A stretch of 60,543 nucleotides of DNA, from NCBI GenBank assembly GCA_000388065.2, contig KB932201.1; one strand, 5' to 3'. The notes beneath the pieces are model-generated. The model was not told the DNA's origin and did not search any database. It saw nothing but the letters and a program-made list of their open reading frames with translations. Below are positions 2,691 to 12,153 of the stretch, piece by piece. This stretch comes from Fonticula alba ATCC 38817. Taxonomy: Eukaryota; Protista; Nucleariida. Position 1 is the stretch's first letter, and each line of letters begins with the position of its first letter. The translations under genes and the position numbers were made by a program.

Positions 2691-3466
2691 TCAGGGGAAA
2701 GCTTCATGGGCGCTGGAATTGTGCTTGTTGCTCCAAGAAGACGCGGCGGCCTCGGCCGGGAGGTCGGCATCCGAGTCATCGTCTTCTCCATCGGCGTCCT
2801 CGCCCGGGTGGGAGGTGGCATGGATTGTGCTCGCCTCCTCGGCCCGGTCAAGGTGCTCGTCAGTCTCAACATCAAAGAGGGGATCATTCAGACCAATCAT
2901 GCTGGCCACGAAGTCGCTGGCCTTGATGACACCTAGCACGATAGCAAGCAGAGGGGATTGGTCAGTCGAGCAAGAAGGTGGAGGGGAGCAAGTCAAATGC
3001 CGAGCGGGGAAGACATACCACGCCAGGTTCGCTGGGCCAGCGACGCTAGGGGAGACTCATCCGGCGGACCAGCCGCCGGATCAGCAGTGTTCAAATGGGG
3101 CTGCGCAGGGAGGGGAGGAAGGCCCATCTCGGCACGCATACGGTTGGTCGAGTCCACGAATAGTTGGTTCAGCTCCGCATCCACCTCGGGGTCATCGGGG
3201 TCGGCGTCGGAATTGTCGAAAATCCACATTTCCTGCGCCCGAAGAGAAGTTAGATGCCATGCGGGCCATGCAGCTCCATGGGAGGCGAAATGGAGCGGAG
3301 AAGAGACCAGAGGAAGGGGCAGTGCCACACGTACCCGCCCATTGCCAGAGGTCACCTTGACCAAGCGTGTCCCATCGGGCCGGATCATGACCTGTCTCTC
3401 CCCCTGCGTCGAGGTGGAAGGCTCGCTGGGATTGGAGAGGGCCAGCTGGCCGTCGGAGTGGGTCAT
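2691..3466 (-). CDS. Hypothetical protein of ~200 aa with an acidic tail; weak FAM177-like segment
   Basis: Three modelled exons: 3466-3335, 3232-3019 and 2932-2691, with GTACGT/GTATGT donors and CAG/TAG acceptors that keep the frame. The segment ASDFVASMIGLNDPLFDVETDEH loosely resembles the FAM177 core. Confidence 0.55.
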
Positions 3467-3500
3467 ACTGTGAGCAGAAGAGGGCTTGAGTGGAGGGGAT

Positions 3501-3502
<2 letters not shown>

Positions 3503-3550
<48 letters not shown>
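3503..3550. repeat. Poly-G homopolymer (~48 nt)
   Basis: Seen directly; lies just upstream of the minus-strand gene. Confidence 0.9.
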
Positions 3551-3552
<2 letters not shown>

Positions 3553-5334
3553 GAGAGAGGGAGGCACCCGGTGGGGGGAGGAGGATGAGGAAGAAGGAAT
3601 CTGGGGGGCGGTTGCGGCGGACCGCCTGGTAGGTGGGATTTATTCGGGCGCCCTGGAGAGCGTGCCCCTCCCCAACTGCATGGGCAGGCGGGGGAGGGGG
3701 GGGTTCGCTCGAAGGCCCACACGGGGCGAAGAAGGTGGTCGGATGGTGTTGCGGGCCAGCCCTATCTCCATTCCCGATCGCTGGGGGATCGCCTGCCGGA
3801 TTGGAAGTGTTATGTATCATGTGCTTCCTATATCACCACCCAGCGTCTTGACTGGGGATCTGGCACGTGTGCGCGTGATTGGTTGTGGCGGGTTTATTTG
3901 GTATTCAAGTGGCATTTTTCGCAGCTCAAACCCCGTCAGCACCGGTCGGAGGTCGCGCAAGTGACGTAAGAACAGCGGCGCGAGAGCCGTAGGAAGGAGG
4001 GAGGGGCGGAGGGGCGGAGGGGCAGAAAGAAGATTCCTGGCTTGCCTGGTCATAACAAGGAGTCAGGCCAGGAGCAAAGGCAAGGGCGGGGGGGGGGGTC
4101 ACGAAGAAGATTCTACCGCGGTCGAGTGCTTTCCCGAGCGTGGGAGAACTCCTGGACCTTGGTTTGTGGGGCGCGCTGCGGGGGGATATTTATTTTTTAT
4201 CCCCAATATTTGTTGTTTCTTCCCCCCAGGGGCTCTTGGGGGGGGGGGAGGGAAGAGGAAATGTGCTGCCAAGGCACTGGCCCCTCCCCCTGGCCCGGGG
4301 CTTCCTGGGAACGATTCGTCGTTTAGAGTTCGTGTGCCATCATCACATTTGCACCCGAGCATATGGCGGCTAACCTGGACGCGGGCGCTGGGCCTTCGCG
4401 AAGGTCCTAGCATTCCCACGTTCGAACGGTCCCTCGGTCCCTCCCCCGCCCCGTTCGTTCTCCATTTGGTGTTTGATCCACAGTACCTAGTTCGGGGCGG
4501 GGAGCGGCGGGACGGGTGGCCCCCTTCCCCCCCCCCCCCCGCCCCCCGCTGCTTTGCTGCCCATGACTGAGTCTTCCCGCCCTGCCCCCTGGCACCTCCC
4601 CACTGTGGGGATAACGCGAGTCGATCGGAGCTCAGCGGGCAACCAGCGACCCCCCGCCCCCCGTCCGCCCCTCCCCATCTCGCTCGCGTCCAGGTGCGGA
4701 CCCCTGTTGTGTTGAGCAACCAGGTGTGTGTGCACCTCTTGCCGCCGGGCTCCCCGGTCAACAACCAGGGGACCTCCTGCTTTGGGCCCGGGCAACATGG
4801 CCCAGCTGAGCCGCCTCCAACAACTCCTTTCGGTATCTCCCTACATGAGGCGGAAGCGGCGGACGAACCTCCTATTCGCAGGCCTGGCAAGATTTGATCG
4901 GGGCTGCTGCTTGTTGGCCTTCTCGGGGAAGGAATGCCTGACGCTAGCCGCGGCCGAAGGCATGTGAACGCGATGTGTTGCTGCCTCTAGACGGCGGCGA
5001 TTGCGCAATATTTTTTTCCTCCCCCTCCTGGGACGAGGGGTCCTTGCCTCACCTCCTGCCGCCCTCTGTCATCGATTGAGGCAGTGTGGGGGGGGGGGGG
5101 GGACAGAGAAACGTGTTCGACGCGGGGCGGAATGCCCCGCCGCATGTCTCCTCCCATCTCTCCGCGGCGCGCTGGCTGGCGTCTTCGTCCTCCTGGTGCC
5201 CTTACCCCCCGGGGCAGGTCTTGCATGGGAGGCTGGGTCCATTCTTGTCCTGCCTGGGGCAAGGGCTGTTTGGTTGTCCGCTTCGCCACCTCCCCCCTTG
5301 CCGCGCCGTGCAAGTTTTTGTCGAGGACGGAGAG

Positions 5335-10066: not shown

Positions 10067-12153
10067 TTAGTTGGCGGCAACCTTGGCGGTGGCGGCGTCG
10101 ATGGCGTTGACCTTGCGCTTGAGGACAAGGGCGGCACGCTTCTCGCGCTGCTCCTTGATGCGCTGGGCAAGGATGGCCTGGTACTCGGCGGCAGCCTCGC
10201 GGTGGGAAGCCTTGCGCTCCTTGCGCTCGGCAAGGAGGGCGCGCTTGCGCTGCAGGCGCTGGGGGGTGACCAGGCGCTGGATGGCGGGGGCCTTGGAGCC
10301 GACCTTCTTGTCGCCCTTCATGATGTCACGGCGAACAACGTAGTCGCAGACGTTGTCCTCCTTGGACAGGTTCTGTGTAGAGAGAGAGGAGAGGGAGAGA
10401 TGGGCGGGTGGTGGAAGGGAGGGGAGGAGGAGGATGAACTGCGTTAGGAGGGGAGAGAGAGACAGAGGGGGAGAGGGCAGGCAAGGTGCTGGAGTGCGGG
10501 GGGATGGAGGGCCTCAGAGAGGGCGGGCGAGGGTGTGTGTGTGTGTGTTGCCTCATGTTCAAAGTTCTCAGTCACGAAATTTGTTACTCAGACAGGGATA
10601 ACTTGAAAAAATTCTTCATCGGTCACCACACACACACACACACACGGACGCGACCACACACGGTCCAGCGCGCGCGAATCTTCCTCCCGCTCTCCTCTCC
10701 CCGAGAGTGACACACGGAGGGGGGAGGAGAAGGGGAAGAGATATGTCGCACATGGCTCTCGCGCGCTGCCACAACCCTCTCCTCGAAGGGCCTCCATCGC
10801 TACGTTAGTCGGCCCCACATATGGCCGCAGCACCGCCGCCCGCGTGGTGGCAGAAGCGGCCATGATGGGGGAGAGGGGGGAATGGAGAATGCACGGGGCA
10901 CGCACGAAGAGCTTGCGGATCTTGGAGGCACGCTTGGGGCCCAGGCGGACGGGCTTGGTGACATCGTTGAGGCCGGGGACGGTCTCGGCACCACGGCGGA
11001 CGACGACGAGGTTCATGACGGAGAGGTCGGAACCAGTGATGCAGCCACGGACGGACTTGCGCTTGCGCTCACCAGTGCGGCGGGGGCGGTAGCAGGACAT
11101 GCCCTTGGAGAAAAGGAGGCGGACACGGCCGTGGGACATGATACCCTGCATCATGGGGAAACCCTGCTTGTCGTTACCACCGGTAATCTTGAAGACGTAG
11201 CCCTTGAACTCCTCACCGAGGGAGTCGCCAGCAACCTCCTGCGACATGCGCTTGTCGAGGAAGGGAGCGATCTTGCGCTCATCCTCGATGTCAAGGAGCT
11301 TCTGGCCGCCAGTCTGGGGATCAGCGATGTTGAACTGTGGGGAGGGAGAGAGGGAGAGAGAGAGGTGTGTGCAAACGACAGCCGGGAGAGTTAGACACAT
11401 GACACAACCACCGGGCCATCGTGGCCCAGGAGGAGGGCGCCAGTCGGGGGAGAGAGAGAGAGAGACCGCGGAAGCGCGCAATCACGCCTCAGAGAACCGC
11501 CAGAGGAGACACAAACGACGGAAGAACCGGCGGATGTGGGAAATAAATCCTGCATCCGACAAAACCCAGGACCCACGGGGAACACACGAGCACAGGGAGC
11601 GCATGTGCGGCTGCCCGGCGTGGCTTCCGCAGGGCCCCAGGGGACCGAGAGAGGGGGGGAAGAGGGCCAGTGATAGGGGGGGCGCGCAGACCGGCAGCAC
11701 GAGCGACGGAGGGGACACAGGCGACCATTGTCCTCCTCCTGCTCTTCTCGATCCTCCCTCCCTCTCTCGGATATGCACCCTGGCGCAGGGGTCTCTCCCC
11801 TAACAGGGGGAGATACAGGCTCAGGGTGGTCGGGCGCAAAAGGGGAGAGCGACAACCATAACCGACGGCGGACACCGGCGATAGGTATGTCCCTCTCTCG
11901 AACGGGCGCGGGGCGGGGTGTGTGTCTCCTCTGACGTGCTCTGCGGTGGGGGGGGGAGGCGGACGCGCTCTTCCGGCGGCGATCGGGGGCATGGGTGCAA
12001 ACAGAAGGGAGAGGAGGGCGGAGGGAGGGCAGCATGGCGGGGAAGGGGAGGAGTGACGAAGGCAAAGCGGAAGGAGACAAGGGACAGAGAGAGAGAGAGA
12101 AGGAGAAGCAGTCAATCGCGCGCGGCGAAAGAGGCAAAAGTACGAACCTTCAT
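10067..12153 (-). CDS. RPS6: 40S ribosomal protein S6 (eS6)
   Basis: Exons 12153-12148 (MK), 11334-10906 (FNIADP...[12 protein letters not shown]...[16 protein letters not shown]...[13 protein letters not shown]) and 10372-10067 (NLSKEDNV...[11 protein letters not shown]). Splice sites are canonical. Confidence 0.98.
10550..10626 (-). ncRNA. snR38: Intronic box C/D snoRNA, snR38/SNORD1 family (predicted LSU rRNA 2'-O-methylation guide)
   Basis: The minus strand reads CCGATGA (C-like, 10622-10616), then AGTTATCCCTGT immediately followed by CTGA (D', 10591-10588), then GTGACTGA, then ATGA (10556-10553). The 12-nt guide is perfectly complementary to the conserved LSU rRNA sequence ACAGGGAUAACU. 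The element is an AT-rich island in a C-rich intron. Confidence 0.8.

Follow-up and report, generated by a model that had tools for sequence, protein, structure and literature searches.

The second coding intron of the RPS6 gene of Fonticula alba ATCC 38817 harbours an AT-rich patch for which a sequence-only reading had proposed a box C/D small nucleolar RNA (snoRNA) of the snR38/SNORD1 type. The locus raises the question of whether this patch encodes a functional snoRNA, to which family such an RNA belongs and how it could work with terminal boxes that depart from consensus. The analysis covered the window, a stretch of 60,543 nucleotides from contig KB932201.1, the 31.3-Mb genome and an environmental set of more than 120 snR38-type loci collected with a pattern of C box UGA(A/U)GA, guide and D' box. 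A literature search on snoRNAs of F. alba found no description.

Host gene

The RPS6 gene was searched exon by exon against Pfam, without a joined coding sequence. It is laid out in the window as follows.

12148..12153, minus strand: RPS6 exon 1, coding part ATG AAG, then 5' splice site GTTCGT
12147-11335, minus strand: RPS6 intron 1, 813 nt, between exons 1 and 2
10906..11334, minus strand: RPS6 exon 2, 143 codons; Pfam PF01092 Ribosomal_S6e, E 1.5e-50
10373..10905, minus strand: RPS6 intron 2, 533 nt; 5' splice site GTGCGT, candidate branch site CTAAC at 10447-10443, 3' end CAG
10067..10372, minus strand: RPS6 exon 3, 101 codons plus stop; open frame that continues the S6 C-terminal tail

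The exon frames join as M-K/F-N-I...K-L-F/N-L-S, and RPS6 is single-copy in the assembly. The PF01092 match on exon 2 (E 1.5e-50) bears out the host named in the sequence-only reading, and its "intron 2" is indeed the second coding intron (10905-10373), counted after the exon 1 ATGAAG at 12153-12148. The snoRNA is contained entirely in this spliceosomal intron, which carries no second one, and is read in the same direction as its host, as expected of intron-encoded snoRNAs. No other Rfam match was found in the RPS6 gene; a search of RPS6 intron 1 and of the surroundings of the second genomic copy (see below) for further snoRNAs with Rfam returned only chance-level miRNA/lncRNA matches. Within RPS6 intron 1, window positions 11480-11560 (minus strand) form an AT-richer island with a hairpin GGAUG...CAUCC and a CUGA, in which neither an Rfam match nor a clear box set was seen.

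Anatomy of the snoRNA unit

Read directly from the window, the minus strand from 10626 to 10550 is CCGATGA-AGAATTTTTTCA-AGTTATCCCTGT-CTGA-GTAACAAATTTC-GTGACTGA-GAACTTTGAAC-ATGA-GG, with a spacer of 12 nt after the D' CTGA and before GTGACTGA. The following parts were assigned.

10549..10624, minus strand: predicted mature box C/D snoRNA, ~73-77 nt, with ends placed by typical spacing, 4-5 nt ahead of the C box and 2-5 nt past the D box
10613..10619, minus strand: probable C box AUGAAGA (RUGAUGA with U5->A), register kept in both genomic copies
10592..10603, minus strand: D' guide AGUUAUCCCUGU, complementary to LSU rRNA ACAGGGAUAACU
10588..10591, minus strand: canonical D' box CUGA, from sequence anatomy and RF00213 alignment
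10568..10575, minus strand: C' box region GUGACUGA (UGACUGA), one base more than the family consensus UG(U/C)UGA
10557..10567, minus strand: second antisense element GAACUUUGAAC upstream of the D box, 10 of 11 nt the same in copy 2
10553..10556, minus strand: D box AUGA (UUGA in copy 2; family consensus CUGA)

The elements C, D', C' and D stand in the order and at the spacing right for a box C/D snoRNA. Inside the unit, the D' box is a canonical CUGA with a 12-nt antisense element before it, the internal D'/C' arrangement of the box C/D class. The terminal boxes each carry one mismatch to consensus (AUGAAGA, U5->A; AUGA, C1->A), and the parts of a box C/D kink-turn are readable in the sequence: G-A/A-G pairs, a flipped U and a CC/GG closing stem, followed by a 19-bp external stem. 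The GC content of the 72-nt core is 37.5%, versus 66% for the remaining intron with repeats excluded. Much of the sequence-only reading was thereby recovered, namely its element string at 10550-10626 (an exact match on the minus strand), its AT-rich island within the intron (37.5% GC core versus 66% remainder) and its perfect D' box. Its description of degenerate terminal boxes stood for the D box, AUGA departing from CUGA; for the C box, AUGAAGA is a better reading than its CCGAUGA. These sequence features support the assignment of the element to the intron-encoded box C/D snoRNAs with a guide of the snR38/SNORD1/snoR38 type.

Guide and predicted rRNA target

By the D'+5 rule, the guide picks out the middle G of GGG in ACAGGGAUAACU through its C at 10596, five bases upstream of D'. 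The snR38/SNORD1/snoR38 family is defined by target equivalence. Here guide and D' box match the RF00213 consensus at every one of 16 nt and are the same as in the more than 120 environmental homologues. This upheld the guide type proposed earlier, the equivalence of the sites being taken from the literature (PMC5027498, PMC8817022, PMC3511168). Deletion of snR38 in yeast abolishes Gm2815 (PMC5027498), to which human Gm4362 (snR38A/B/C), Arabidopsis Gm2805 (snoR38Y) and Dictyostelium Gm3148 are equivalent (PMC8817022, PMC3511168), and RF00213 has been traced back to the last eukaryotic common ancestor (PMC3511168). Guide and D' box are present in more than 120 environmental eukaryotic contigs, and the target was therefore argued to be invariant.

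Of the nuclear LSU rRNA, just the final ~510 nt are present in the assembly (L005 1487-2020; G000:C8 ~1854242-1854774). This piece directly follows a 20-N gap and begins ~70 nt past the target site, so that the gap appears to be where the target site should lie and the remaining nuclear rDNA appears to be missing from the assembly. Because the LSU target region is absent from the assembly, target complementarity rests on the universal conservation of this rRNA segment. An LSU match on contig C211 was rejected as the nuclear target, being bacterial-type with a tRNA cluster and thus mitochondrial; the sole SSU match, on contig C214, was set aside as probably mitochondrial too.

Upstream of the D box, GAACUUUGAA(C/G) is conserved between the two genomic copies. 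In a genome search the 12-nt complement of this second antisense element occurred only at the two snoRNA loci, and the element formed no good duplex with the available LSU fragment (last ~510 nt).

A second genomic copy

The 16-mer of guide plus D' box was found at just two places in the genome, in the RPS6 intron (copy 1) and on contig C8 (copy 2). Given the composition of the window, it is expected ~0.0015 times, and both occurrences fall inside box C/D-like units. The 12-mer complementary to the guide likewise has only two occurrences genome-wide, each antisense to a snoRNA unit.

G000:C8:591905-591984 (= L011 5906-5985), minus strand: second snR38-type copy with D box UUGA, RF00213 29 bits

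The copies share ACC(G/A)AUGAAGAAUUUUUUCAAGUUAUCCCUGUCUGA and (G/A)UGACUGAGAACUUUGAA(C/G)(A/U)UGAGG. Across boxes and guides they show 4 differences in 61 positions, compared with ~7 in 12 across the internal loop and 53 in 80 across the flanks. Fisher's test, for which slightly wider blocks including four 3'-flank bases were used (7/65 differences), gave p ~7e-4 for boxes and guides against the loop alone and p ~4e-12 against loop plus flanks. Boxes and guides were kept while loop and flanks diverged, which therefore indicates selection on both copies. Such a pattern would be expected of a box C/D snoRNA under selection, unlike that of a recent neutral duplicate.

Copy 2 lies in a putative intron of 243 nt (GTGCGT at L011 6050-6045, CTAAC at 5852-5848, CAG at 5810-5808), and ~59 nt separate its 3' end from the candidate branch site. 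The putative host is unannotated and has no evident coding exon. A tRNA-Glu(UUC) gene that ends in a T-run is located on the same strand, 270 nt upstream. A tRNA-snoRNA dicistron was considered for copy 2 and rejected, since the T-run is a terminator and the copy is bracketed by splice signals.

Family assignment

A scan of the whole window at Rfam gathering thresholds gave no match. When 401 nt were searched with E-value reporting, snoR38 (RF00213) was the best among 4227 Rfam families, with a full-length match of 32.4 bits (E 0.0017); the second-best snoRNA family was Aspergillus Afu_328 (RF02403) with 21.9 bits. Genome-wide, the top two matches of RF00213 were the RPS6 locus and G000:C8:591905-591984 (29 bits), both below the gathering score of 45 bits. 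The covariance check suggested in the earlier reading thus succeeded in the ranking, snoR38 topping all Rfam families, and fell short in the score, 32.4 bits against 45. Because of this score under the cut-off, the RNA was filed in the snR38 family by guide and target equivalence.

A second covariance model, R1, was built from 43 non-redundant environmental homologues with both copies of this genome excluded, and searched against both strands of the window plus a 10-kb stretch of C8 (70.5 kb). It matched only the two copies (26.6 and 28.9 bits; E 0.014 and 0.005), a result that depends on the guide match because the homologues had been collected with a pattern of C box, guide and D' box. Scores were modest in both models. 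Across the 43 aligned relatives the C and D boxes are invariant (D box CUGA) and both depart in this genome, the invariance of the C box being partly forced because the scan pattern demanded UGA(A/U)GA. No close relative turned up when metagenomes were scanned for exact 32-mer matches.

Which bases form the C box

In copy 2 the register CCGAUGA reads CCAAUGA, with the loss of the G of the first sheared G-A pair, and for this reason AUGAAGA is the preferable reading of the C box. Copy 1 would in the CCGAUGA register have a C at the position of the flipped-out U, and the terminal stem would not abut the box. AUGAAGA, situated three bases downstream of CCGAUGA, is present in both copies and keeps R-U-G-A in each; in this register exactly three bases separate the GA from the CC/GG closing stem, which is conserved in both copies. 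AUGAAGA is therefore probably the C box in use. That it is CCGAUGA, an ancestral register aligned to the UGAUGA of relatives, is rather unlikely against these observations, even though loci L074 and L110 read UGAUGAAGA, so that by homology the ancestral box aligns with CGAUGA, and model R1 aligns copy 1 in the CCGAUGA register. The same model aligns copy 2 in the AUGAAGA register. The UGAUGAAGA of these two relatives makes a slide from the ancestral to an overlapping C box plausible.

In box C/D kink-turn geometry, position 5 of the C box usually forms a U-U pair with the U of the D box. With AUGAAGA, position 5 would instead pair A-U with the D-box U, and G6 would face A in copy 1 and U in copy 2; since the D box begins with A or U, kink-turn stem II lacks its usual G-C pair. 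A shorter RNA that takes the CUGA of the C' region as D box, as in the R1 alignment of copy 1, was rejected. It has no terminal stem, and conservation between the paralogues runs 20 nt past that CUGA.

External stem and position in the intron

The snoRNA is flanked by two complementary repeats.

10627..10645, minus strand: external stem 5' arm, (GU)n run
10533..10549, minus strand: external stem 3' arm, (AC)n run

Together with the CC/GG pairs (10622-10621, 10552-10551), the arms can form a stem of 19 bp with one bulge and one mismatch (-32.3 kcal/mol), and the 126-nt fold around the unit has a z-score of -4.0. The window contains 11 GT and 3 CA runs of at least 6 units; the sole GT/CA pair no more than 300 nt apart is the one that flanks the snoRNA. 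Copy 2 has a short stem only. Copy 1 is positioned ~105 nt from the candidate branch site in RPS6 intron 2. For vertebrate intronic snoRNAs the optimum is roughly 50 nt from the branch site, and according to Hirose and Steitz vertebrate snoRNAs far from the optimal distance reportedly tend to rely on external stems. We infer that the long stem at copy 1 may fit this vertebrate rule. External stems are believed to make the kink-turn more stable and to help the snoRNP assemble, and many reach beyond the mature ends (PMC4150776). Alternatively, the (GU)n/(AC)n stem could serve as an RNase III entry site.

Hosts of related snoRNAs

A tblastn search for RPS6 exons next to the more than 120 environmental snR38-type loci found none. 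Six fungal-type environmental loci instead have an snR38-type snoRNA ~130 nt upstream of an exon that encodes the GST_C and EF1G domains of eEF1-gamma (L029, L039, L059, L097 and L122; GST_C alone was detected in L017). The snoRNA/eEF1-gamma regions are:

L029 3687-4627
L039 1893-2791
L059 8036-8954
L097 ~3115-4362
L122 8636-9905
L017 1306-2046

Their arrangement matches that of TEF4/snR38 in yeast (PMC9351541), so the relationship between snR38 and an eEF1-gamma host looks widely conserved. In this genome EF1G is represented by two genes, both located on contig C9 and both devoid of the guide. With snR38 in RPS6 here and in eEF1-gamma in fungal types, the location is therefore non-fungal, in keeping with the mobility that snoRNA genes are known for (PMC3511168).

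The eEF1-gamma domain matches at G000:C9:177274-177591 (minus strand) and 185310-185627 (plus strand) have identical scores and lie ~8 kb apart in inverted orientation, a pattern that points to either a recent inverted duplication or a duplicate made in assembly. In the environmental set, tandem snR38-type copies 220-560 nt apart were seen in L023 (1361, 1618), L075, L119, L077 (5092, 5654) and L080; these have canonical boxes and strong terminal stems and are plant- or alga-style clusters by look.

Interpretation

The RPS6 intron very probably encodes a functional box C/D snoRNA that corresponds to snR38 of yeast, SNORD1A-C of human and snoR38Y of plants. The sequence anatomy of this RNA, its family resemblance, its conservation between paralogues and its host gene were established; its expression, assembly, processing and activity in methylation we infer. 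It would be transcribed within the RPS6 pre-mRNA, where the C box AUGAAGA and the D box AUGA would be joined by two C-G pairs that continue into the (GU)n/(AC)n external stem. The boxes would form a kink-turn and nucleate a particle of Snu13, Nop56, Nop58 and fibrillarin, and after splicing and debranching exonucleases would trim the intron back to this particle. In the nucleolus, the 12-nt element upstream of D' would pair with LSU rRNA 5'-ACAGGGAUAACU-3', and fibrillarin would methylate the 2'-O of the middle G, the site of yeast Gm2815 and human Gm4362.

A different account would make the RPS6 copy a decaying or poorly assembled duplicate and copy 2 on C8 the working snR38. The degenerate C and D boxes and the non-optimal intron position of copy 1 speak for it, as does the existence of a second copy in a short putative intron at a near-optimal ~59 nt from its candidate branch site. 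Copy 2 is equally degenerate, however, with the C-box region CAAUGAAGA and the D box UUGA, and copy 1 scores above it on the Rfam model (32.4 versus 29 bits). Conservation of boxes and guides but not of loop and flanks implies selection on both copies, and the long external stem of copy 1 looks compensatory rather than decayed. We consider such a decay of copy 1 improbable. Least probable is that the likeness arose by chance in an AT-rich stretch of intron without any RNA gene. The scores are under the Rfam cut-off, and the 12-mer alone could arise by chance in 31 Mb; against this, the 16-mer is seen twice at an expectation of ~0.0015, each time with C, D', C' and D in order, and 57 of 61 functional positions are kept at a second, unlinked locus. 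A functional snoRNA in the RPS6 intron thus remains the preferred explanation.

A joint reading of all these features can be offered tentatively, and is on balance doubtful. The snR38 gene may have left an eEF1-gamma intron, its host across fungi, for RPS6 intron 2 and a second locus; the ancestral C box may have decayed and AUGAAGA, three bases downstream, taken over. Inverted (GU)n/(AC)n microsatellites may then have been recruited at the poorly placed RPS6 site as a 19-bp stem that rescues assembly or gives RNase III entry, and the GAACUUUGAA element may guide an extra lineage-specific modification.

With this conserved snoRNA the analysis fills a gap in the annotation of a little-studied relative of the fungi, a sound but ordinary gain, and predicts that the ancient methylation close to the peptidyl-transferase centre (yeast Gm2815) persists in this organism. 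With one guide in eEF1-gamma introns in fungal types and in an RPS6 intron here, it also provides a small concrete case of snoRNA mobility, and degenerate terminal boxes may be tolerated given a long external stem. The general understanding of snoRNAs is unchanged, the family being ancient and well known; the box slide, the microsatellite stem and the difference in host are modest points of interest.

Comparison with known systems

Yeast snR38 lies in an intron of TEF4 (PMC9351541). Like the RNA described here, it is an intron-encoded box C/D snoRNA in a gene of the translation machinery, and the two have in common the antisense element that precedes D' as well as the predicted target G (PMC5027498, PMC9351541). 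They differ in the host, which is RPS6 and not eEF1-gamma in F. alba, and in the degenerate C and D boxes, the microsatellite external stem and the presence of two copies here. The C-guide-D'-C'-D layout is shared with human SNORD1A/B/C, plant snoR38Y and RF00213 (PMC3511168, PMC8817022). Compared with RF00213, the spacer from C box to guide is shorter here. The human SNORD1 copies reportedly lie in a non-coding host, SNHG16.

The Neurospora homologue CD23 is intronic and also uses a D' guide (PMC2780460). The guide is shared with CD23, Afu_328 and the fungal-type environmental loci, whose C'-region UGUUGAGAAC resembles UGACUGAGAAC here, and some fungal-type relatives carry UGAUGAAGA at the C box. 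The fungal-type environmental loci have canonical UGAUGA/CUGA boxes, UGA(A/U)GA having been a condition of the scan, whereas the boxes are degenerate in F. alba.
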